Assembly (NCBI GenBank): GCA_907165135.1
Contig: OU015566.1
Location: 11,594,001-11,658,000, forward strand
Source: Oikopleura dioica
Lineage: Eukaryota; Animalia; Chordata
Direction of reading: 5' to 3'
Length of the DNA: 64,000 bases
Part shown: piece by piece, positions 1 through 16,947 of the stretch
How positions within the stretch are numbered: the stretch's first letter is position 1
How the letters are laid out: each line of letters starts with the position of its first letter
Notes under the pieces: generated by a model
What the model saw: only the letters and a program-made list of their open reading frames with translations
Told to the model about the DNA's origin: nothing
The model's database searches: none
Program-made: the position numbers and the translations under genes

Positions 1-187
1 CATAACTTGAGCGCGCGTAGTAGTCTTCGATGCTCCCGGGCGCCCTCGAAATATCTGCAAACTTGTGGGAAGTAGTGGCAGCGCGATCGACCGAAATCGA
101 GATTTCAGGAAACAACAATTGAACCTAACTAGAAACCGAAAAAACCGTTAACAAGAGAAAACAAATATAAATAGAGATTTACCGAAG

Positions 188-3100
188 ATGTTTGACGAAG
201 ACACGCTGAATACAGGAACGTGATAGAATTTGAATAAATGGTAATTTATTATTCTAAAAGTATTTGCTTTCATTATCAAAATGAATAATCAGAAAATGCT
301 TGTGTTGCATCACGAGTTTTAAATAATCATTTCTTCGGTGATAATTAATTTTAGCGTAACTATAGACAAGGGCGTGTTCTGATTCCGCGTCCTGAAATGT
401 TACTATATCAATCATCCCTTTCATCGTCACGTGCAATTTAATTATCGATCATTTGTTGAGTAAAGAGCCATTTATTTCGATACGTTCTTTCGATTTTTTT
501 AGTATCTTCTTCGATTACCTGAAATATCGGAAATCAACATGTAGATTTCGGAGAGATTTCTTATGGTTTCTTTTTAAGAACCCTATTGGGTTAATATCAT
601 ATTCAGAATATTAGCTATATTGAATGAAAAAGTATGAAATTATTAAAAATAGATAGAAAATACTCTTAAAAAGAGGACTTTTGTCAGATCACGTGACAGG
701 CCTTGGGCTGTTCCCCTCGCCCGACAATTTACAAAAAGTGAACATCGTCATGGTCGGTGACCAAGGAGCTGGCAAGACCAACATGCTCGTTTCCTACTGT
801 AATAACGAGTATCCGGCCGAATACAAGCCGACCGTGCACGACTACTACACAGGTACTTGATCATCACATAACGCCGTGACATCAACAGGACATGCAGACA
901 CAGATTTGCAGTAAAATAAAAACCGTTTTCTAAAAGGATAAAATTGATAAAAAAGAGAAGGAGATCGCTGTATATTTTATTATATTCTGTAAGAAACGAC
1001 AATGAAACATTGTACAATCAGAATTACACAAAAAACAAGCAGGCTGCAGAAAAAGCTGGTGATACTTATGTCAGCCTGACAGACAGCAGAGCTTGTAAGA
1101 CCCCCTGTAAGTTCTTTGTTGGTTAGGGTCGCGAAAAGTTGTCGTAAAACCGATATGAAATCTTTCATTCATGCTTTTTTCTGCCAATTTATCGCCAAAA
1201 ATCGCCTGAAATGAAACTCAATGTGTTAGTTAAGCTATTGAATCAAAACCTTCCGCCACCAACAAATAGACCTTTATCTTTCCCCAGCTCAAATATCTGA
1301 GCCTCTAAACGCCCATTCTTGACAAGCAAAATTGACAGTCATAAAACTGTCATTTCAACTTCTAGGAATTGGGCCAAGGGTTGCTGCTTTTGGACATGAA
1401 TTATAAATTTGAGAGGAACAGGCCGCTTTCTTACGAGCTCGTAAAAAAGACATTAAACATGCACTATTGACTAGCTTTAGAAAAAATCCACGAATTCTCT
1501 CCCCTTTCTGATAATCCTCGTTCTAGGCCTCTAAAGTTTTTACATTATCTACTGGCCGCAAAATCAGATCGCAAACACGCTCTATATTCTCTTCTGAAAT
1601 GCTCGAAACGAATGTTGAACGTGGTGGAAAATACCACTTTGAGGACGCGTCACAACATTTTTTAACATATAATAGGTTCAAAGATTTTCCCAGGGCCGTA
1701 TTTTCCGGGTTTCATTAGAAACTCTAAAATCGAAATTGAGACAAAAATTCATCGATTAAAAAATATCGAAATATTATCTTCAAATACTCATTGCGCGAAT
1801 AAGAGGGAAAAGAAGGATTGATCATAAATCAACGCAATATTTTATGAGATAAAATCAACGGTAGCTGTTTAATTCCTTCTAAAATCTTTGTCCACCTGTT
1901 CCTTTTTGGAATAATCTTTTTGAGTTCTTCCTTTTTTCTGCGTCGAAAAGTTTACTTTATAACTAAACCAGTCTATAAATATCACTACACCGTTTTCTCA
2001 CCATCTTTCCAATGCAAGAAAAGATTCATTATGTCACTTCTTTTCTTCAATTTTTCCAAAAAACATGCCTTATTGAACTTTTCTTTCTATTTAATTATTA
2101 AGAATTAAATTGTCAGCAAACCTGGATCTGACGTTTTTGGACGCAATAAGTCGGCTTTTTTGGAAAGCTGCGGCTTGTTGTTGAAATCCAACAAGTGCTT
2201 TTGGTCGGAACCGGAGGAAATTCCGAAGCTTTTGAATAAATAGCTTATTTTGCATCTTTTAGGCGTAGAAGAGGGAGATACATTTGTTGACTCAGAGTCT
2301 GCCACTGGTATTTTCCATTTCTAAATCAAATATTTTGAGCAGCTTTTCTGGCACTCATGATATGAGCTGGTGAGCGTGGTAATAACATATCAATAACGCG
2401 CGGTGCAAGTAGGGTTCTCAAAACTTTGGTCGCCGCGAAGGGCATTATCATTTCATAATTACGGCACCGTAAACTAGCTACCGTAAAGTAGCCTCAGTTT
2501 GAAAATGAAGTTGCGTAGATAAACTTGCGAGGAGATTATTATGACATCATGTGGAAATTACTAACTTCGGTTCACAGCTTTGAAGCTGATAGATGCTCAA
2601 GCTCTAGAATTTTCAAAAAACCTGCATTTTCGCGTGAATAATGCTCTTGAACATCAACCACTAAATATTCTTCCACGGAAAGTGGCTTTATCCGATCCCT
2701 TCCACCGTGCCATCCATTTTATGCGCTACTATCAAAAACGCTAAAATTTCCACGGCAGGGCATTATCTGTCTCCTGTCACTTATTCACCTGGCGCTCACC
2801 ACGTGACCTGTTCAACAGAATAGTACTAGAATAGAGCTGACAGAGCTTCTTTTTTTCCTGACACTGTCAGTCTGACAGGCATGGAATTTCCGATGTCTGC
2901 GTTTCGTTGAAACACAACTCAAGTCGGCTTTTCCGGCCCCCGCGGCGAGAATGGGTTAAAAAAATTTAACCTCTCAAAAGTCATTTTTCAGGAAAATGTT
3001 TGCCGGATCATATTTGAATGATGGTTCGATTCAAAATAAGCTTTTGGATATTTTTAAATAATTTTGAATCACGTCTGTTCCTAAAAATAGCGCTTTCGCT

Positions 3101-6100
3101 CACTGTTTTCGAATAACGCCGTGTTTAAACCAAATGAGTAACATTACGCCAAATTACCGGATTTACTTCAATGGCGGCTCTCGACGCGTTAACGTGCTCT
3201 TCTTCAATTTCCACGAAGCTTTGGCCCCTTCCCTAATCCCACACAGCCGGCGTGAACCCTCTTTCCATTCTCGAGATCGAGAGGCCTGACGTAAGCGGCC
3301 TTCAAAAAGCCCTCGTAAGAAATTGTCGCACCTGGGATCGTCCTCAAAAGCTCGAGCCTTGATCGTCTAAATATTTGACGCGGACAGGGTTCAATTTTCA
3401 GTAAAGAACGCAGACAATGAGATTTTGGTTTTGAAAATTTTCGAAGAAAAAAATTTTCGTCAACTTTTCTGAAAATTTTCATCACGAAAGTACAGAGGGT
3501 GCTCATTTTCGACCGGTTTTTATATGAAGCAAAATTCTTGAAATCGTTATCTTCTGAGTCTTAAAATTTGTACCTTCAGCGACTGTTATTTTCTTTGACA
3601 AAAAAAAACAGCTTTGTTTTCACCTAACAGTTTCGCTTGTGCCTTGACCCTTATCCTGACCCTTACCATCATCCTTATGTTCTTAGTTATCTCGTAACCA
3701 AATCAATCTCTTGAATTCGGGAAACCTTTCTCCGCAGTATGTAACGACATATTATTTGCTCTTTATCCGGAAGTCTACTTATCCCTTCTCTTTTAAGGAT
3801 ATAAGCTATGAATTTGAACTTTCGTAGCGCCTAAATGCGACGTAGGATCATTTTCATTTCAAAAGCAGTCCTACCTGAATTGGACGTAGAACTCAAATCT
3901 GGAATTTTTGAAAAAAATCTTATGGAAAATTTTCTCTCTAGAGCGATTTCAAATCTTACGCTCTCGATTGCTCGAATTTTTTCCATTGAATCGCTAAAAC
4001 TAAACCGTGTCTTTTATTTTGATGATGTTAAGCTAGAAAATTGACGGGCTCTTATTTCCAAACTCTCTCAAATTATCATTCTAGCGTTTTCCTCTTTCTT
4101 GATCGAGTTTTTCTCCTTTTTGTGCTTTTTTGCGTGCAACCAATCAAAGCGCTCCGCTCAACCGCGCCACTCTCACGGAAAAGAGGAGTTGAGAGAGCGA
4201 GCGCCCAGCGCGTCGCTTTTTACACTATTCACGCGCTGGGTAAGCCTCATGGAAATGGCTCTAAAATCGGTTTCGGTCGGAATTAGGCAAAACTGATCCG
4301 TCAATTTTATAGATAAGGGTTAAGAGAAGTTATTTATCGAAAAAACTCGACCGATTTAGTGTAAAAATTTCGAGCAATCGAGATCGTAAGATTTGAAATC
4401 GCTCTAGAGAGAAAATTTTCCATAAGATTTTTTTCAAAAATTCCAGATTTGAGTTCTACGTGCAATTTTAGGTAGGACTGCTTTTGAAATGAAAATGATC
4501 CTACGTCGCATTTAGGCGCTACGAAAGTTCAAATTCATAGCTTATATCCCTAAATTCATAGCTCATGCCCCTACAAGTGTCTACAGGGAAAGATAAGGGT
4601 TCAGCAATTGTGAATTGAGTGTATACACAACTGATAGACAAAAAAGAAACAGAAAACTCGTCCCTGCTTTTTCTCAAATTGCGGTGTGTACTTTTTGGAT
4701 AAACGAAACCCCCGACGCTTTCTAAAACCGCGAATGAGCTCAACCCCCTTAACCGCTGGACGCTAAACTAAGCCACCGAAATCCCTGAACTTTTATTCAA
4801 ATTCGTAATGATTCGACTGGCCAAACAGCGGCATGAGAGAAATTGAACATGCGATAATGTAATCTAACCATGTTCAGCTCAGCTGGAAAACTCTGGAGGC
4901 AGTTAGACTTTCTCAAGATGAGGCTATCTAGATGTTTGGAAAGAGGGTTCCGATTCTGATAACTGTCTGATTTGGCGCAACAGCAATTAAACCCTTGCAA
5001 AAACTCTTGTTCAAAGAACGTGTACAGCTGTGTTTTTGTCCATGTCCTTTCTGCTAAATTAAAAGTGCAAAGTAGCAATGTCGCATATTTTTACTCCCCA
5101 CAAGATTCCTTGAGGGTTAATTTTGCGTCATCAAAGAGTTGTTCCACGGAAAAGAAGAGTTCTTCTCCGTACGTGTTAAGATTTTTTTCGAATAAACGAA
5201 GAGCGTGTTTATACTACAGACTGGAACGAAAGGGTTTCTAATGCTCTGTTGAGTATACAGACAGAATTTGGCGCAGAAAGCGCGGTACTTTGCTCAACAA
5301 TGAATTTTAGAGACTAAGAATGACTTCGCTTTTTTAAGGTATAAATTCTTGAGCCACCAAATCTTGGCTGATTTCTCTTCAGAGAACTCCCTCTTTTTCC
5401 TTGTTGGCCACCGTCTTATCTGTGTGACTATTCCGTGATATGAGCCTGAGTCGCCAAAATTGCACCCTGGTTTATTGCCGGAAAGATAGCTCGATAAGCT
5501 GCTACTTCTCGGAAGTGATAGACGCTTGACCAGGGGTTCGCGCCGCCCTTAACACCAACCCCTAATCAACTCTTCTACTAATCTCGAGTCTAAACAATCT
5601 CCAACCTCCGCTTGGTTGTTTTCGTTCAATCTAATGAAGAAGATGCGGTTTTGTGCGGTCAGTGGTCAGCTCAGATTTTCTAGCTCCCGCTTCTCCTTCT
5701 GTTCCGCAGAAAACGTAGTGAACGCAGCACGTGACAGCTCCGCAAAATTGAGATTTGTTCATAAGAAAAACGAAAAGAAAGCGGAAGCAACGTAGAGAAC
5801 ATCATGCATAATTATGGAAAGGGCGAAAGCGACGATTACATGCTTTGAAAAAGGGTTAACATTTTTTTCGCCTTCAAAGGTGGATTGACCGCACTAGCGC
5901 GAAAGAGTGCGTAGAAGCAGTCAAAAATTTTGTAGCGTCAAACAAGGTCTTCAAATTTTTGGCCAATCAAAAAGCTTCTTTGGGCCTTCTATCCAATCAT
6001 CGTTCAAATAGCCCTTAATAAGTTCTCCTGAAAAAACGCTCCTGAATAAACGGATGATAAATGGACAAAAACGAGCGTTTCGGTTGGAAGATCTGATTGT

Positions 6101-9100
6101 CTTTCGTCTAAAGTCTTTTTGCACGTTTCTATGATCCAATCTTTTCATATAAAAATTCGATCCAATTTCCCTTTGGTCGAGAGATTACGTGTTTCGATCA
6201 TTCCAAGTAACGCGCCGGGCCAATCCGCACAATCGCCGTTTGAAATGAACCACACTTGTTTGGAAGTTTATTTAACGGCCAACCGGTTAGAGGGTCGCTA
6301 ATCCGACAGCTTTTCGCTTTATGCAACGCCGGACCGAACAAAAAGAGCTCAGACTCGTCAGCGGCAGGCCGGTTTATCTCCACTTCCAGGGTTTCGGTTC
6401 TTGCGAAAAAGATCAGCAAAACAAATCTCCAATAAAAATGAAGCTTGTTTCTTCCCAAGACATTTCGTCAATTACGTGTCTTTCCGTTTCTGCCCCGAGT
6501 TCAACTTGAGAGCATCGCGTAAAACATGCATTTTAATAAGTTTTTCGCTCAATTGAAAATTGAAATTTGCTGACCCGTCAAGTTATGAAGACAAACCACG
6601 CCCCTGAATGCTTCTCCCGTCATCCAACTGGACAAAAGTTGTATTCAAAATACTTAAGAATCGCACGGTAAATACGGGGTTATATAAACGGATCGAAAGG
6701 TGGTTATTTCGAGGGTATGTTCTAAAAGCCCTCGAATTCACGTGACGCAGGGGCTTGAGCAAATATATAATCGCGTAACCCCCCGGAACTAGAAACCAAA
6801 ACCTACTGATACGAATCTAATCCACTAACTGAACTCGTGTTTTCAAGTTTGCAAGTTCGTAATACAACTTTTGAAAAACGGGCACAACTTGAAATATTCA
6901 TGTTTTCTTGGAGAATGATTAGGAATGTTGACATCGATAATCTGATCATCAAGGAGTCTTCTTTCACAGAGCATATTATGATCTGAAAAATAAGGGTTTC
7001 ACTTTGAAAACTCAAATTTACAATATTGCTTTCGATGACTTCCGCTTTTATTATCCTCCCTGAGCTACGTTTGTTTCAAAGGGGACGTGTAATCAAGTCG
7101 CTAGCTAAGACTTCCTGAGATCTAAAAATCCAGCTCAATATCTTATGTCTTCTCTTTTTTATGCATGATCTGGCGGATTAGATCCGCAGTTTCGAAAATT
7201 TCGATCTTTTGTGGCCGCAAATCTGTATTTTCGCTATAACAACTTCTTCGTTTTGAATTACGCCCTTGCTGTTTACGTAACAACTCTATTTTCCGCACAG
7301 TACTCAATTTTCTTTCTTAACCATCTCTCGGGAAAAACTGTCACGGAAAAGCGGATTTTGTGGATCTGCGTAATTACGCGCCTAACTTGTTAAGTTGTAT
7401 AAAGCAACGTGCCGAGACGACGTAAAAATATGCGCAGCTGAAGTATCTCAGCTTTTTTGGTATTATCCAAAATTCACTAGATCATGTCACGTGACAGCGG
7501 AAGGAGAATAGCAAGGGATTTGTCATGTGAGAAATTTTAGGAGGAATGTCTCAGAATATTTCTGACGCAATATGCAAATCTAAGACATTCGAATAAATTC
7601 GAGAATTTGAGCCAATCAGAGGTGAGATGAGCCAACAAAAGCGCCCTCCATCGATCAAAATTATCGGAATTATGATTAAATTGCTCATCAAGTAAATCAA
7701 TCATCAGCATCCTTTTTCTGGCTATTCATCTTCTGACCATAACTAAATGCATTTCAATGAACACGTCAAGATACCAGTGACCGGAATTGGTGCCGTAATC
7801 CACTCGGAAGCGTCCTTTCTTGCTATAAAGGTCAGAAGAAAAGTGATCCGATTTCTGGTTCGATCAAGGCGCTGCCGATTCCGCCAGTGGCTTCTTCTGT
7901 TCTTTTGAGCGCCTTTTCGGGAACAAACCGCTACGAAGGGTTTGGACACCTCTAGGTTACATAAAATGGAGGCAAAAATAAGATACAGTAAAAAGAAGCT
8001 GCTAGTCTTGAAATAACCCTCATGTGTAAAAAAGACCACGTTCCAAATCAAAAGCCATTTTGGTTCGAACATATGTGTTCGATTTTTTTCCCAAAGGTCG
8101 GTGAATCTTTCTTGCGGTTTGAGATTCAGCATGGAACGTGCCCCTGCGCATACGATGTTCCCTCAACTCGCCAACTAGTCTGAAAGCTGAAAAAATTGCG
8201 TGTAATTTTGATGAATGAATTTCAGAGCCACCTTGAACCTCCAGCTGAAGTTCTTTGTTCACAAAGAGCTCATGCCATTTCTCATAAAAAACGGATAAAT
8301 TATAGAAATCAAATTTTCATCCGATAGATGGCGCTTTGTCCTCGCAAACGATATTCTGATTGGTTGAGAAAGATATTTGAACAAATCTTGAACTGAAATT
8401 GCCCTCGTGAATTTCAAAAAGCTGCCGCGTTTTCTCAAGTCTTTTTAAGGGGTTCAAAACACAGCCGCCCTCAACTCATTCGATAATATTGTTTTGACCC
8501 TCGGTTGAAATCTCAATTGGCCAATATTCCCGCTGTGGTTGATTCTGCGGCATTTTGAGCTTCTCTTTCCACCACGTGTAACTACCGAAACATCTTTCGA
8601 AACTTCCTCTGACGTAATTTTTCCTTGTTCTTCTGTCTGTAGCAGTTCCATCCATCAAGGTTTTCTGGCCGCACGCATCCGCCAATTTGGCGATTTTTTG
8701 AAGGCTTCGCTCAATTTAAATTGTCGTCATTGTAACAAGTACCGTTACGAATTCTGGGTAGATTATTTTCCGGGGCTGGTTCCGTTGGTTTTTGGAACAC
8801 GAGATATTTGTTTTTATCTAGGATGATAATCAAAAGATATTTTTCTCTCCGGTCTATTCTCAGAAGTAAAAGCATGAACAGAATTATAAACTCTTGAGAC
8901 CAAACTCAACCACTCAATTTTCAAAGTCAAGAGCTTCACTTTTCCACTCAAAAAAGAATTTGTAAAAATAGACGTGTACTTCCTTCCATTTAACCTGTCA
9001 AATTCAGGAGAAGCCGTTCATTTGAGCCTTCTCTAAGAACACAAAGCTGTGAAAAAAATGCTCTAAAGAGTCTAAAGATTTCGATAATTTCTCCAATAAT

Positions 9101-12100
9101 CGGTCGAAAACACGATTTATACTCTAAGATGGATGTGTCTATGAGAGGGTTCAACTCAAAACGAAACGTGGCTTCTTATTTTAGAATAAATGGCCGTTTA
9201 AAATGCTCCTTCTGAATACGGGAACGGATATCTCCGCTCAGTAGAATCGGAGACTTTGCTTCCGCATTACGTTCTCAGAACGGAAAAATAAGTTTACTCT
9301 GAATTCTGGCTTTTGGTTTTTTGAAAAATATTAATGATCTAAAACGGGGTCTTGCTTTGATCCCCGCTGACTTTCGAGAAAATGCCCTTTCGTTTAACAA
9401 AAAAGGATGAAATTCGAATTTTCCCCACACGCGAAAATTTCCTTCTGTGGCGCAAAAATCTCCACGCTCGCTGAATTTGCCATTTGCGTTGACGTCAGAG
9501 TCCCGTTTTTCGTGTGTGAGTGTGTTCGTTGGGAGCCTTTTCGGAGTTGTAAAAATTCGCGAAAATTCCGCAAGCTCATCTTGAACAGGTGTTTGAGTCA
9601 GACTCGCAACGAAATGCGCGAATGCCGCTGTTTTGTTTGACTATGACATACTGAGCGCAGTAGAGTTGTAGAAGGTTTCTTACGGAATTTTAAGTTACAG
9701 TAAAGCATCCTTATATGAAACTCTTGAAACCAACCAATAAGAATTATGATGGCGCTGTTGAACTCTTATCCAATCAAAATGTTCGTTTTATCGACATTTA
9801 TTTGGTCAAAAGTAATGATGAAAAACTGAATTCAATAAGTCGACAAGCTCGGTTTTTTTTCAGTCAGATACTGTCATCAATTTCCTGACCATTCTCCATG
9901 GTACCGTAAAACTTTTGTTAACCCTCTTAACTTTTTCTTGAAAAAACCTGTGCCCGGCCATAATCTGCTCATTCCTCAGTTAGAACATTTCTGCGGTAGT
10001 TGCTGCTATTTTGCCCAGCGAACCAGCAATTTCCTTCTTTCTCGACATCTGTGCTATTTCCGCCGATTGAGTTATTTTTTCCTCGATCAACTTCACTTTT
10101 GTTCAACTTAGAACGAATAATGTATTTAACCAGCACGTGCTCTATTTTGTGCCGTTTTTGGCGTTATTTGATTTTAACCCGTGCGCGCGTGGCAGCGCTT
10201 AGAAATGAAGCTCCATTGTAAGTTCAAAAAGGTGCCAAATTGGTTTTAACTCACTCGAGAGTCTCTCGAGAGAGCACGTGGGTTAAGGACATTGCTTCGA
10301 GTAGCGTAGATGCTCGAGAATAAGGGGAAGGTTCGCGGCGATATTGGATTTATCGACCGCGCGATTGAGATTATCGCCACCACTGGTGTATAAATGTGTC
10401 TTTTTGTTGTCACATCGGCCGGCGCGATGAGTTAGGTCTTGATAGGATTCACAAATCTTAGTTAAATTTACGAAGTATATCATAATTCTATCGAATTGTC
10501 AAGAATAATGAAAACTTGAGTTCGATGAACAAACTAGAGTTTTATGGCGTCTACTTTTGTCAACTTTGTTCGTCTCTTTTTCTTCATTCAGGAATTTTCT
10601 TCGCGGAAACGTTCCCTAAGACCTTCGTGAATTCTCCTCGGCCCTAGAATTCTGAGCAAATTAGACATGCGCTCTTCAATTCAACGAACCTTTAAACCCT
10701 GCTTCTCCCATAATTACTGATTCATCATAATTGACCCAGCTCATAATTAACCTCTTAATTAACTAAGAAGAATTTTCAGTTTTCTATTCTTATTTTAATT
10801 TCTACAAGTGTCCAAATATTATTAGTATTTATATCAACTTGTTCGATATGGTCGTCTTTAAACCGCAGGACATAATACCGTAAACCTTTTGGATAATATT
10901 TTGCCTCGGAAAAAGGAGCAATCTCGCGCTTGTAATTGAACAGGAGGCTAATTACTAGTTGTAGACCAAAATGTTTTAAATGAAAGTCTAACGGAACAGG
11001 CTTTTTCATTGCTACTTTCTCCGACTCAAAACAAGAAGTATAACTTTATACCGGTGTAGCAATGTTTGGTACTCACACAAGCGTTTTTGTATAATAAAAA
11101 AATCCCTGGAATTTCATTTTTTCAAATATTTAGTCAAACAGAAAATGTCAAAAGGGGGCAATTTTGTGTTCAAAGCGGTATACGTGTGAAAAAAGGTTAA
11201 TTTGTAAATTGCAAATTGAAAAATTTGATAATTTGTTTTGCAAATTTCAGTTTTTGCAAGATTTGATATAAGCTGCTCGGGCGTTATTTACGTAAATAAT
11301 CAATTTTCGCGCATTAATTATTTTAGCTCAACATATCTACTTAGTTTGTAGTTGCATGTACGTGGCTCCCCTCCCTCTTGACCTCAGCATGGTACATTGC
11401 ATGATCCTTACTTTACAAGCAGAATTTTAAATTGCATTTTTCATTATCACAAAGGTCTTCTCAGGGCAGAAAAGCGCTCTTCATAAAAAACGCACTTTGC
11501 TCAAACTTTGCTCTAACAATTTGTATTCAGTTCGACTTGGAGTTGAGGGGCGACAAACTTCGGTACAGCTCATCGATACTGCTGGCAAGGTAATCAACGG
11601 ACAGGAGAAATATTTTGTCAATGACCCTGGAGGCCTTTTTAGAAAGTAGTTTAGTAACCGTGATAATAAACTATCCATGTAACAACACGTTTTCAGGGAT
11701 ATCATTTTGCAAAGTTATACCCAAAATTGCGTCTTATCAGCTTGACCAAATCGGTCAGCTCTCCTGCCGAGATTGGGTCTCTCTTATCACTTTTCATTCG
11801 AAATTTTGAAACAAAGAAATATGATATTTCAAATATTTTTTTAGATCAAAATAATTTAAATTTTGAAGAAAAAAATATGAATCATCAAAATCATTCGAAT
11901 CTTTGATGATTTCAAAAAAAATTTCGCGGGCCTGGAAATCTTCAAAAAACTTCTTGTCTAGTTTTGAAGAGCTCGTCGAGACGAGTCGAATAATATACAA
12001 AACTCCAGATAGTTTTAAGATTTTCTGCCAAAAAAAGTGATAAGAAGGTGTCTTATCAAAAATTTTCTGACCGGCGCCGTTTTTGTTCTAGAAAAGCTGA

Positions 12101-15100
12101 CGTGATGCTTGACCCCGGAAAATGATCCTCATGGGCTGTTCTATTCCGGCAAAAAATTTCAGCTCGTCATCATTTACCCAGCCGAGTTTATCGTAAAATT
12201 TCATTTTCCAAGGAAAATGGGACTGTAAATGGGCCGGAAACTAGGAACGTGCAGCGACAACAAAATGCACTATTTTTTTGATTTTTCGCTGATAAGCACA
12301 GCAGGATATGTGAGGACGAGCTGAAATTTTTTGCCGGAATAGACCAGACCATGAGGATTATTTTCCGGGGTCAAGCATCACCTCAGCTTTTCTAGAACAA
12401 AAACGGCGCCGGTCAGAAAATTTTTGATAAGACACCTTCTTATCACTTTTTTTGGCGGAAAATCTTAAAACTATCTAGAGTTTTATATATCATTCGACTC
12501 GTCTCGACGAGCTCTTCAAAACTAGACAATAAGTTTTTTGACGATTTCCGGGCCCGCGAAATTTTTTTTAAAATCATCTTTGAGCAAAAATATGAGGGCT
12601 TAGATAATCGACATTAGCAGGAAATACCGCGCGGTGAAAAAAAGTAATGATTTTCACCTGAAAATGTCTCCTTTTTTCACGTCCATGTCCCCCGCCGTCA
12701 CGTGTTCACCCGTTTCCATTTCCGTTCGAGTAAAACATGACACGAGATCACGTGTCAGATCCTGAGCTGGACAAGGAACTTCTGCTTAAAATTTTTCAAA
12801 TGCAGAGAAGTGTCATTTTCGACACGCTCGCGCCGGAAAAGAAGACGCGTTTTATGATAAACTTAACAATGATTCTTTAGCCCGAATTCGGACTCTTCAG
12901 AAGATTGAGCTATCCAGACGCGGAAGTGTTTTTGCTGTGCTTTGATGTCTGCGATCCGAGAGCGTTTGCCAGGGTTAGGGATTATTGGTTCATGGAGCTC
13001 AAGGATTATAAAAGAAAGGTAAGAATTTTTCTTCAGATTATAAAGGACCTTTTTGCATGTGCATATTTCATGACTTGAATTTATATTTGATAATCGTTTC
13101 TTTGAATGAGAAAAAATATAAACATGATTTTAAATTATTAATTTTAAGGGTTTCAAAAAACATTGCTCTAGAATTTTTTTAAGGAAAATAAAAAGCCCGA
13201 GGAAATTTCAAAAACGTGTGCTTTTTTTGCTATCTTTGTTTACAAGATTTTTTGCTAAGGTTAGGGCTTTTATCTTCCCATGCTTGTACGTTGGGTCTTC
13301 ATCCCTCTAAATCTCAAAAGACAGTTTCTGTGAAGTTAATCGGGTTAAAAAATGCGTGAACTTGGCGAGCCGTACAAGTGCTCTAAATATTTGCCCGGTC
13401 GGGTTCGTCTATTATGACTTTCGAAACGTGTAAGACATGCTCCCATGTAATCGGAAATTTTTGAAGAAGTGCGCTTAAGGATCCACCCGCTGGAAAAGGT
13501 ATCCGTTTTAATAAATGATCAGGGTAGAATAAAGAAGAAAAAAAGCATGAAAAAATACTTAAAACTTATCATTTGACTGCTTTTGGCAACAATTTATAAC
13601 AGTTATTGATGGCTTTGTTTCATTTACCTCTTTAGACTCCTGTAATTCTCGTCGGCACCCAAATCGACCGCCGCGGCGACTTCAACGAAATCGCCCGTCT
13701 CGGCCGCCAAAACCTCCGTCCGATCACAACTCAGCAAGGACAACAAATGGCCCGCAAAATACGCGCCAAAAAGGTAGGCAAATCGCATTTTCAAAGAAAA
13801 ACTTGATAAGAAAGAGCGGCTTCGAATGAGACATCATCGTCAACGTATAATTCCACCACTAATTGATTCCCAAGCTTCTGAAGGTCTAAAATGATTTTGC
13901 CTCTTCCGCTAAATGCATCATTTGTTTAGATTTTTAAGCAAGAAACTTTCTCTAAGGGAGCTTCAAAAAGTTCATGATCGGCATATTTTCTTCCGGAAGT
14001 TTCCATTTGCAACAAAATTAAAATCCCGCAACCGTTCGCGTGCCGTAAATGCTTTACTTCCATCATCCGATCTAATTTGCGAGCAACGGGCTTTAGACTA
14101 TTTCGCGTAAATATCTTCACCCCGCTTTTAGAGATCTTGCAATGTAGAACAGAGGCCGCCAAGAATTTCGTTCATTTTTCTTAAGTTTATGGCCACGTGA
14201 TTGTTATCACGAAACGTCAACAGTTCGTCATCTAGCGGGACCACTCTGAAAATAAGATAATATAAGGAGTTTTTCCTTGTCTTTCTTGTGAAAATTTGAA
14301 CAAGCCACGTTGCCTTGACTCAGAACGGCGCTTTTGAGTTTTCATGTTTCAGGCTTCTTATGACAAGAGTAACACAAAAAGCACGCTCTCTTACAAAATA
14401 GAGCAGCTTAGAATGTTATATTTCTAAGTTCCGTAACAGAGGAACTTAGGTGCCACTTAGGAAAAGCCTCTCAATATGCATAATGTGCACACATGCATTT
14501 CAATTACAGTCGCTTTATTTTCATGTTATTTTCATTTTGACTCACGTTTTCTCACATTTCTTGCATAAATATGTCTTTTTTACTAAAAAAATGATTTCCT
14601 AAAATTGAAGATTTGCCAATTCTAGCATTTTCTAAGACGGAGAATGACGACTCTTATAGATAATGACGTTTTTTTTCCAACAGACAATGATAAGTTTAAT
14701 CATTGAACGGGCACTAGACTGCTAGCAAGGCTTCTTGTTGATTCCATGAAAAGGAAAAAGTCTTAAGAAAATGATAAAAAAATTTTCCGGGCTTAAAATT
14801 CTCGATTTCAAAATTATAATTTTTGATTAACACGACTTTCATTTTCTTGAATTTTATTGGCTATAAGTTCGAAGTTTGAACCTTTTTAGAAAAAACGCGT
14901 ACATTTGATAACAATATTTTTAGTACATCGAATGTTCCGCTCTGACGAAAAAGAATCTGAAGAGCGTCTTTGATTCCGCCATTGTTGCCGGCCTGGACGA
15001 ACAACTAAAACTTCAAAAACGACTACATGCTTCCTCCAGGCTTAGTTTCGGGTCTAAAACCTTCACTTCACATTCTTGAACACGTGGCCTTTAGAAATCG

Positions 15101-15546
15101 GGGAAATCCATTTTTTTCAAAGAGATTGAGCGGTTTGGATTAACGAAAAACAGACTCAGCTGTTTCAAATAGAATCTTTACTTGCAGCAAGATAAATTGA
15201 TTGAAAAAGGAATTAAAGAAAGGAGGTTTATCTTGTTTTTGAGGTGAAAACATGGACTGTGTTTATTTGCGAATGAATACAGTTAAATTTCAATTATTGA
15301 AACTATAAAAGCCTTCATAACCTCAGTTTCCGTCGCCTCTCTGACGAGCTGCGAAAGTCCCTCCGCTCTCTGGAAAAACGAAGCTCAACGCATTCTGGTT
15401 CAAGCCGCTCCAGTGCAGCCAGTTCTAGAGACAGTTCCAGTGGAAGCAGCAATTCTAGGAATGGGATAGAAAAGAGGCTGTTTTGCGTTATGCGGCCGAT
15501 TATGAGGTGCTGCATTACTTTGAGGGTATTTGGCTCGGTATTTTAA
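188..15546 (+). CDS. Atypical Cdc42/RhoJ/RhoQ-like Rho GTPase, multi-exon
   Basis: Exons: 188-215 (tentative, GA donor), 688-852 ([23 protein letters not shown]), 11531-11589 (IDTAGK), 12881-13018 ([13 protein letters not shown]), 13636-13773 (VILVGTQID + Rho insert), 14924-15039/15079 (YIECSALT). Possible terminal exon 15327-15546 via a GC donor. Phases are consistent; G1-G5 boxes present. Confidence 0.9.
3792..4554. mobile_element. Foldback/MITE-like element with long inverted arms in the Rho intron
   Basis: ~190 bp near-perfect inverted repeat (3792-~3980 vs ~4368-4554), weaker match extending inward to ~4047/4298; non-coding; no clear TSD. Confidence 0.75.
10246..10286. mobile_element. 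Tiny TTAA-flanked palindromic remnant (piggyBac-like)
   Basis: TTAA-ctcac..tcgagagtctctcga..gtggg-TTAA; 33 bp core. Confidence 0.35.
11907..12575. mobile_element. Non-autonomous long-TIR (foldback/Mutator-like) element in the Rho intron
   Basis: ~260 bp inverted arms (11907-12168 vs 12315-12575); flanking direct repeat ATCTTTGA at 11899-11906 and 12576-12583. Confidence 0.85.
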
Positions 15547-16947
15547 AGCACTGTGGGAAAAGGGGACGCGAAAGGTCAACATGTAACTCTTTCGGGAAAA
15601 GAATGCTTTTTGACGGGTTAAGCGGGCATAAGACTGTATTTTCTATAAGGTTCTTTTTCTATTACATCTGTCATGGCTAGCCTTAAATATTTTTAAAAGA
15701 ATGTTTCTGATGAATTCAAAGTTTTATATCGCAAAATGAAGCAAGAACTTGGCAACGTAAAATGATCGAAAAATTAAGCGTGAAAAGGTATGACGATGCG
15801 AGATCATCAAAGTCATGTGTGATCATGTTCGAGGGATGAATTTGGGAAGGCGTTGACGCCGAAACGCATGTCTCGCTAAACCAGCGAGAAATTCCAGCGA
15901 TCTAGATTATCGCCCCCGATTTACTCGATTACTGTTTTTGCCCGTCCATCATTTATTTGGATTTCTATACTCTCAGCGCAAATTAACCGCCATCTAAGGC
16001 TACGAAATCTGGATAAAAGATGGACGTAATCTTAATGACGAAACAAAGTACATCACTCAGCGCGGGTGACTTTCTTATCAGTACCAAAGTCGCAAGGCTT
16101 CTGCGATAACATCCCGGGAGGGCCATCATCTCCTTGTCTCCGATGGGAATTTCCGTTGATAAGGCTTGTCCCGCACGTTGTTGCGGAATTAATTGCGAGA
16201 TCTAAGATCTTGTGTTCTACTTTTCGGCCATTTTTCTATCCAAAAACTCAGCTCCGACGAATCCGACTACACGAAGCCAACCTATTCGAAGACTTTCAAT
16301 CCGGACACGATTTCTAGTGCTCCAAGTCGCCCCCGTCCATTTCTCAACTTTCTATGCATGCGCTAGCTAGACCCCTAAGCATCTACGATTCCACCCTTGA
16401 AAGGCTAGAATTCTAGCCACTTCAGATTTTCCAAAATTTGTTCCTAACTTATTCCTTCCTATTTAAATTTGTAAATATTCCACGATGTATACAACTTGTT
16501 CTTTACATAAAATTCTACTTTTGACAAATTTGTTTGAAACCGCTTTCTGCTTCTTAAAAATGACTGAGAAATGGACCGTCAACTGGACCCGGTCGAAAAA
16601 GGTAAAAAAATGCTTTTGTGTAAATAGATTCAGAGAACGAAGATCCTAAAATCCTTAATTGCCAGATGAATGAAAGAAGCGCGAAGATGTCGTTACTTGA
16701 CACAAACATGAACACAAGCTTACTGTAAATAAAAGCTAAAGTACATTCTCTATAAGTTGTACGAAATCAATGATTTTTATCGTTCTCTTCCTTGATTTCA
16801 AGAAAAAATATGACTTCAGTGACCTTCCAAGCTGCCTGAAGCTGTCATTCGTGGACATTTACTGGCATTTTTTCGCTGATAATTGCAGTTTCCGGAAATC
16901 TTTACCGAAAAATACCAGTATTCAAAAATCATTTTATCATTTTAACC

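Follow-up and report, generated by a model that had tools for sequence, protein, structure and literature searches.

Can a small GTPase of the Rho family lose both residues on which GTP hydrolysis depends and still be maintained by selection? This question is raised by a locus of the Okinawa lineage of the chordate Oikopleura dioica, located in a stretch of 64,000 nucleotides (contig OU015566.1 of assembly GCA_907165135.1, positions 11,594,001 to 11,658,000, hereafter the window) that has about 39% GC and long introns. The original prediction, made from the letters alone, was of an independently evolved Cdc42-like Rho, GTPase-deficient and lacking a CAAX box. We show that the locus is an expressed and strongly conserved gene for a small GTPase of the RhoU/RhoV (Wrch/Chp) class, the only such gene of O. 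dioica. Transcript comparison and RNA junctions give a coding sequence (CDS) of eight exons and 900 nt for a protein of 299 residues ending in NFLCMR, within a transcript that spans approximately 86-16755 and exceeds the 188-15546 first proposed. It is reasonable to predict a GTPase-deficient atypical Rho, since the catalytic residues are replaced, purifying selection is strong, the gene is transcribed and there is no CAAX box. This part of the initial reading stands, but the family and the C-termini that it proposed were wrong.

The P-loop reads GDQGAGKT (756-779) and has Gln31, with codon CAA at 762-764, at the position numbered 12 in Rho proteins. Position 61 is Lys80, whose codon (AAG, 11587-11589) closes the DTAGK of exon 3 before the frame resumes with PEF at 12881. 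Aligned with Cdc42, the protein has Q/Y/H/K at positions 12/28/37/61, Tyr47 being position 28 and His56 (codon 837-839) position 37, and these residues had been read correctly at the outset. Switch II is altered as a block, K-P-E-F-G-L-F, including Lys-Pro at positions 61-62 (Q61K, E62P). Gln61 orients the hydrolytic water, and a side chain of any kind at position 12 gets in the way of the arginine finger of GTPase-activating proteins (GAPs). In Ras and Rho proteins, Lys61 and residues other than Gly12 are well known to block hydrolysis. Because both GTP-hydrolysis residues are replaced, the protein is probably locked in the "on" state. On sequence only, the substitutions at these two positions would place it with the GTPase-deficient Rnd and RhoH; where RhoU and RhoV have Gly12 and Gln61, the window protein has Gln and Lys. 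All G1-G5 motifs are present (GDQGAGKT, Thr54 as the equivalent of Thr35, DTAG, TQID and CSAL), and Gly29, Lys35, Thr36, Thr54, Asp76, Gly79, Asp137 and Ser177 are invariant across 47 aligned relatives, the window protein included. The Pfam Ras family is matched exon by exon, the best PDB matches of the exons are Cdc42, Rac, TC10 and RhoD, and the Rho insert is present.

The codon of Lys80 abuts a splice junction, 11589|12881 (GT..AG), at which RNA had been proposed as a check. RNA mapped to 11400-16500 came from one seawater metatranscriptome (X1), with contigs 90-99% alike, and from another O. dioica lineage, for which three RNA-seq runs primed with oligo-dT (X7-X9) were used, mostly less than 90% alike. 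The junction is carried by one metatranscriptome contig and by 149, 41 and 32 raw RNA reads. No junction restoring Gln61 was found among the RNA over this interval, and the other lineage likewise reads GGA-AAG (Gly-Lys). Expression is itself uneven: the gene collected 469 reads in X7 versus 102 in X8 and 88 in X9, runs of the same study with similar depth, and this four- to five-fold difference hints at stage- or condition-dependent expression.

Is this a gene in decay? The lost catalytic residues, a very long stem branch and the truncation of both public gene models would all be expected of a non-functional copy. Yet, relative to transcripts of three other O. dioica lineages, synonymous divergence (dS) is 0.89-1.00, non-synonymous divergence (dN) 0.032-0.041 and their ratio (omega) 0.035-0.041. 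An omega of about 0.035 at dS around 1 holds across lineages, in all of which an open reading frame (ORF) of 299-302 codons is intact. The figures for the GTPase core match those for the tail (omega ~0.03-0.04). At least four O. dioica lineages are fixed for the replacements of residues 12 and 61, and no full-length version that reaches Gln31, Lys80-Pro81 or the FLCMR end departs from them. The whole protein, substitutions included, is under strong purifying selection. Adding to this the poly(A) RNA reads and the many assembled transcripts, we reject the pseudogene reading on both dN/dS and expression, and regard a decaying copy as extremely improbable.

The family of this protein is hard to tell from pairwise comparisons. 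In the core, Cdc42 is ~45% identical to it, and RhoU, RhoV and ascidian Wrch are 44-47% identical. Together with the exon-wise PDB matches, led by Cdc42, Rac and TC10, these values would fit a Cdc42 derivative that evolved independently and is anchored by a pair of cysteines, as originally proposed. A HMMER search of the whole library with exon 2 returned mostly exon-sized fragments and two leads, an exon-sized ORF from metagenome contigs that is 94% identical (P0001) and a transcript protein of 276 residues (P0027). Searching with the latter gave a set of Logan/JGI marine-plankton transcript proteins akin to the window protein, the nearest of which are 53-57% identical to it in the core. The window protein has in common with this subclade the motifs PTVHD(Y/F)YTVR, LVGTQxDQR and RRLSY, and a Ser-rich tail with SLRRLS and TYSKTFNPD. 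The subclade ends in (L/F)C(L/F/V)G, a CXX motif. Two ORFs of the window matched its tail motifs, one at 15312-15458 and one ending at 16366 (...PTYSKTFNPD...FLNFLCMR*). BLAST of the gene model against the collected proteins led to P0259, whose 90% cluster consists of eight O. dioica proteins derived from transcripts, 297-302 residues long, and the two public models, CBY19526.1 and CAG5107145.1.

We built a maximum-likelihood tree of 57 rows and 219 columns (LG+C20), with ascidian proteins annotated or modelled as Wrch (Phallusia A0A6F9DRP5; Styela and Clavelina models) among the RhoU/V sequences. The subclade, recognizable by His37, forms a joint clade with RhoU, RhoV and Wrch (support 100/99), separate from Cdc42 (97/91), and within it the O. 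dioica gene is sister to three plankton sequences (P0162/P0159/P0164; 98/93). An approximately unbiased (AU) test rejects a clade of the O. dioica protein with Cdc42 (p=0.0018). The RhoU/V traits of the protein are Tyr28, the ECSALTQKNLK signature, both terminal extensions and the CXX at its end; those of its subclade are His37 and Arg69. The independent Cdc42-like origin, for which a phylogeny had been suggested as a check, is thus refuted by the tree and the AU test, and we now hold it to be very improbable. Exclusion from Rnd and RhoH, which are outside the tree, is indirect and relies on the nesting within RhoU/V (100/99) and on the missing CAAX box. Exon-by-exon searches of the species' own genome (64.3 Mb, 19 contigs) show the gene to be single copy and its tail to have no paralogue, and a second Wrch-like locus looked for in that genome was not found. 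A search of the literature library found no paper linking Oikopleura with RhoU or Wrch.

The C-terminus had been proposed to be either TFTSHS* at 15079 or a Ser-rich end at 15546 reached through a junction 15039/15327. Both models translate cleanly and both are contradicted by RNA: the junction is unused, and splicing goes 15045|15312 and then 15458|16252 (Table 1), so that the first end is read-through of intron 6 and the second of intron 7. A joint 15043->15310, with two ambiguous letters, occurs in an X1 contig and in X7 reads, and 33+9 loose ends at 15045 read on as CCTTCATAA..., i.e. from 15312 onward. For intron 7, the X1 contig carries the joint 15456->16250 (+2), and the depth of X1 RNA is zero at 15504-15674. 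Introns 6 and 7 have essentially no RNA cover. The Cys-Cys pair thought to anchor the protein is encoded in the spliced-out, RNA-bare intron 7, and all full-length transcripts end in FLCMR. The spliced end was correctly expected to lack a CAAX box; we looked for one there and found none. The last residues are C-M-R, with Cys297 at position -3, a CXX of the kind palmitoylated in RhoU and RhoV, and this terminal CXX is present in the spliced Okinawa model and in all full-length transcripts.

The remaining junctions agree with this structure. Junction 852|11531 is seen in one contig and in 146, 41 and 31 reads with loose ends, and the RNA loose ends at 11528 carry the 3' end of exon 2 in X1 and X7-X9; 13018|13636 and 13773|14924 (both GT..AG) are present in RNA. 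Transcripts of other lineages align to the window in eight blocks, 86-216, 697-852, 11528-11589 and 12879-13018, followed by 13634-13773, 14922-15045, 15310-15458 and 16249-16755. Exon 1 is based on the N-terminus MFDEDT(I/L)N, common to all full-length transcripts. The 5' untranslated regions (UTRs) of the other-lineage transcripts are collinear with the window back to about 86, which rules out trans-splicing at the AG just before the ATG. The acceptor of exon 2 is probably 699/700 rather than 687/688.

Table 1. Structure of the RhoU/V-type gene in the window (window coordinates; all features on the forward strand).
Feature	Coordinates	Strand	Content and basis
Exon 1	86..215	+	5'UTR from ~86; CDS 188-215 encodes MFDEDTLNT and the first base of a Gly codon
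Intron 1	216..699	+	GA..AG, donor CAG|GAACG; transcript-to-genome mapping
Exon 2	700..852	+	beta1, P-loop, Tyr47, switch I with Thr54 and His56
Intron 2	853..11530	+	GT..AG, 10,678 nt; harbours a foldback element
Exon 3	11531..11589	+	beta2-beta3 and DTAGK; Lys80 codon 11587-11589
Exon 4	12881..13018	+	remodelled switch II and alpha3; Pfam Ras; RNA junctions
Exon 5	13636..13773	+	TQID (NKxD motif) and Rho insert
Exon 6	14924..15045	+	runs to ...HASSRL(S); junction at 15045 in RNA
Intron 6	15046..15311	+	non-canonical; contains the TFTSHS* end first proposed
Exon 7	15312..15458	+	Ser-rich tail to ...SSNS; X1 contig, transcripts, subclade tail motif
Intron 7	15459..16251	+	GA..AG, donor TAG|GAATG; X1 contig joint and transcript mapping
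Exon 8 CDS	16252..16366	+	...SDESDYTKPTYSKTFNPD...RPFLNFLCMR*; Cys297 codon 16355-16357; stop 16364-16366
3'UTR	16367..16755, end approximate	+	other-lineage transcripts align to ~16751-16755; X1 contig covers 16250-16465

Three of the seven introns (1, 6 and 7) are non-canonical. Intron 6 has ends TT..AG, or GT..AA or AG..AA if moved by one or two nucleotides, and neither GT..AG nor G*..AG is possible in any register; its position is kept in the transcripts of other lineages. The GA donor of intron 1, as CAG|GAAGG, and its gacag|G acceptor are kept in genomic contigs of another lineage (L017-L019), and the donors of introns 1 and 7 both follow the pattern AG|GAAnG. The non-canonical introns are apparently why the public models are truncated. 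CBY19526.1 (229 residues) is shortened by read-through into intron 6, and CAG5107145.1 (Oidioi.mRNA.OKI2018_I69.chr1.g3171.t1, from O. dioica OKI2018_I69; 197 residues) combines the same read-through with an internal Met start inside beta1; its core of 187 residues is 100% identical to the new model. The tail and the CXX end are missing from both, and the corrected model of 299 residues recovers the N-terminus, the tail and the lipidation motif.

Two introns carry repeats. Intron 2 (10.7 kb) is very long for the compact genome of O. dioica, and contains at 3792-4554 a foldback element resembling a miniature inverted-repeat transposable element (MITE), with arms of ~200 nt (3792-3993 and 4352-4554) that are 95-98% complementary. 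A second inverted-repeat element is found in intron 3, as a pair of near-identical ORFs of 44-45 codons at 11903-12040 (+) and 12443-12577 (-). A few RNA reads of the other lineage map to 11902-11936, but their loose ends are unrelated, as if they stemmed from copies of a dispersed repeat that is transcribed at other sites.

Some 22 residues precede beta1, with a PSP and no SH3-binding PxxP, and the PDV(I/V)P found in ascidian Wrch and in the sister sequences is degenerate. The C-terminal extension counts ~95 residues after AIVAGL and is rich in Ser and in RRLS/RKS/KRSS motifs. Its exons match no Pfam family. We made an AlphaFold2 model of a close version of the protein (P0276, 97% identical over the 219 columns of the tree). 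Block means of the confidence score (pLDDT) are ~80-97 in the core, with a weaker switch I stretch (pLDDT 64-65), and residues 1-16 and the tail from ~213 are predicted to be disordered. Foldseek superposes the model on Cdc42/Rac at a root-mean-square deviation of 1.1-1.2 Å. The protein is thus predicted to retain a normal Rho fold. One might speculate that it works as a pseudoGTPase-like scaffold, with its function mainly in the Ser-rich tail and its short motifs, and with a nucleotide state that is irrelevant or a pocket that is empty. The tail is constrained as strongly as the core, its motifs are common to the sister sequences and its predicted disorder is usual for linear-motif regions. 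But this is at odds with the invariance of the G1-G5 residues across the 47 aligned relatives, which would be unexpected were nucleotide binding dispensable, and makes a scaffold that ignores nucleotide quite improbable.

When were the catalytic residues lost? Named RhoU/V proteins keep both Gly12 and Gln61. Members of the subclade vary at position 12 (G/A/S/E/Q), and O. dioica alone among them lacks Gln61. The stem branch of O. dioica has 1.51 substitutions per site, versus 0.01 for O. dioica Cdc42, and the acceleration is thus specific to the window gene. Tentatively, the loss of Gly12 is older than O. dioica within the subclade, and Gln61->Lys and the remodelled switch II are specific to O. 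dioica. Of the four substitutions first noticed, the two at the catalytic positions are confirmed, with the loss of Gly12 predating O. dioica; Phe28->Tyr is a trait of RhoU/V at large and Phe37->His one of the subclade. In the order of events that we envisage, the plankton subclade would first have relaxed position 12 (G/A/S/E). A burst of change on the O. dioica stem would then have remodelled switch II (Q61K, E62P and more), and this state would have stayed fixed since. It is conceivable, if doubtful, that this amounts to a stepwise retirement of the switch in plankton RhoU/V, with GAP sensitivity going before hydrolysis and with a phosphorylation switch in the tail (RRLS/RKSxRS) and reversible palmitoylation taking over.

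How might such a protein be controlled? We consider it likely that it is a RhoU/V-type protein that is locked in the GTP form, insensitive to GAPs and provided with a CXX end of the palmitoylated type. It would bind GTP and hydrolyse it very poorly in the absence of Gln61, which positions the attacking water, and the bulky residue at position 12 would block the arginine finger, so that RhoGAPs could not switch the protein off. Membrane attachment would proceed through reversible palmitoylation of Cys297, as in RhoU and RhoV via their CFV ends. With a palmitoyl tether and no off-switching by hydrolysis or RhoGAPs, activity would be set by the level of transcript and protein, and probably by phosphorylation of the conserved basic/Ser motifs of the tail, rather than by a GDP/GTP cycle.

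A different possibility is that the protein is still a cycling switch, retuned rather than abandoned, in which a dedicated GAP supplies the catalytic residue in the manner of RapGAP or Lys80 acts in cis. The nucleotide-binding motifs are all intact and strongly constrained, and switch II was remodelled as a block instead of decaying, which could reflect co-evolution with a partner. Yet Lys61 and non-Gly12 are the very changes that block hydrolysis in Ras and Rho, and the free drift of position 12 in the subclade (A/S/E/Q) is expected if access by GAPs is irrelevant. RhoU co-precipitates with RhoGAPs, in a role that is unclear (PMC6959303). On balance we find a retuned cycle unlikely.

Naturally, several points weigh against the GTP-locked RhoU/V protein that we favour. 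What we say on GTP loading, the rate of hydrolysis, palmitoylation and phosphorylation of the tail is predicted from the protein sequence. Some GTPases devoid of Gln61 still cycle with a dedicated GAP, as Rap does with RapGAP, and loss of the cycle is for this reason no more than probable. In the Okinawa lineage, junction 15458|16252 is found in one low-depth contig, with 29 nt on one side, and transcripts from three other lineages concur. The CMR end is unlike the CFV, CLG and CFG of the relatives, and its final residue is charged. The whole subclade branches as sister to all other RhoU/V instead of joining ascidian Wrch; this may be a long-branch effect, and a single clade of the subclade and ascidian Wrch is compatible with the AU test (p=0.23). 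For the sister sequences, the sole sources are environmental metatranscriptome runs (ERR17..., ERR63... and SRR29...), in contigs that bear no spliced leader or other marker, and, though we infer that they are probably appendicularian, this is what makes the timing of the Gly12 loss tentative.

If stepwise retirement were true, nature would itself have run the experiment demonstrating that signalling by RhoU/V does not depend on GTP hydrolysis. Little is understood of RhoU and RhoV: to our knowledge no guanine nucleotide exchange factor (GEF) or GAP has been established for them, and whether they cycle is debated. O. dioica is a tractable chordate model whose wild-type RhoU/V carries the same two changes used experimentally to "activate" such proteins. 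The intermediate states of its sister lineages provide a natural series on the regulation of RhoU/V without hydrolysis, through expression, palmitate turnover and tail phosphorylation.

Besides the RhoU/V-type gene, the genome contains Rac, three RhoA-like genes and, in the Cdc42 group, a canonical gene, a degraded copy and a divergent Cdc42-like paralogue. The canonical one, at C2:9.20 Mb, is 100% identical to Danaus Cdc42 over residues 1-35. The degraded copy (G000:C5:1268801-1270258, minus strand; L005/L011/L015) has an in-frame stop (KFE*GEK), DTAGQ->DTDSQ and changes at other conserved sites, and is probably a pseudogene of the canonical gene. The divergent paralogue (G000:C4:8573494-8574088, plus strand; L010) has the P-loop GNGYVGKT (Asp11->Asn, Ala13->Tyr) and a CAAX-like end, CRFL, and its long branch (0.67) falls inside Cdc42 in the tree. 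Two near-identical Rac loci, G000:C16:29497-30725 and G000:C1:5996737-5998002, gave the same high-scoring segment pairs (HSPs) and identities; C16, a small contig, is possibly a haplotig or an unplaced duplicate of the chromosome copy.

Among known systems, the closest are RhoU (Wrch-1) and RhoV (Chp), with which the O. dioica protein shares its clade, Tyr28, TQxD, a signature of the ECSALTQKNLKxVFD type, N- and C-terminal extensions, a terminal CXX with Cys at -3 in place of a CAAX box, and the presence of one such gene per invertebrate genome. It differs from the named members, which keep Gly12 and Gln61, by Gln12, Lys61-Pro62, His37 and Arg69, by a short N-terminal extension without PxxP, and by a Ser-rich tail of ~95 residues that ends in CMR, not CFV, and lacks the WWKKY-type basic/Trp patch. 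RhoU and RhoV have a palmitoylated, not prenylated, CXX end; nucleotide exchange by RhoU is fast, and most of the protein is presumed to carry GTP (PMC6959303). Within the same class, C. elegans CHW-1 has a natural Ala in place of Gly12, a residue interpreted as giving partial constitutive activation (PMC5982818). CHW-1 lacks an N-terminal extension, CAAX and CXX, whereas the O. dioica protein keeps the CXX and has also lost Gln61. From classical Cdc42 the protein is set apart by its position outside the clade, by the Q/K/Y/H residues and by a CMR end without CAAX.

Outside the class, oncogenic Ras and Rho mutants (Q61K, substitutions of G12) and the "activated" RhoU-Q107L are changed at the same two positions and in the same direction, with a Lys61 that in O. 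dioica is natural; there, the wild type of an entire species complex is fixed for these changes, which are neither somatic nor engineered. In Rnd1-3 and RhoH, substitutions at positions 12 and 61 are likewise predicted or known to abolish hydrolysis, and control is by expression and phosphorylation. If Rnd3 reads GDSQCGKT and DTSGSP at these motifs, Pro62 would also be shared. Rnd and RhoH are other Rho subfamilies with prenylated CAAX ends, and the O. dioica changes arose separately, inside RhoU/V. The protein would be Rnd/RhoH-like by function and RhoU/V by descent, departing from its own family in two textbook features, the Gly12/Gln61 pair and the PxxP.

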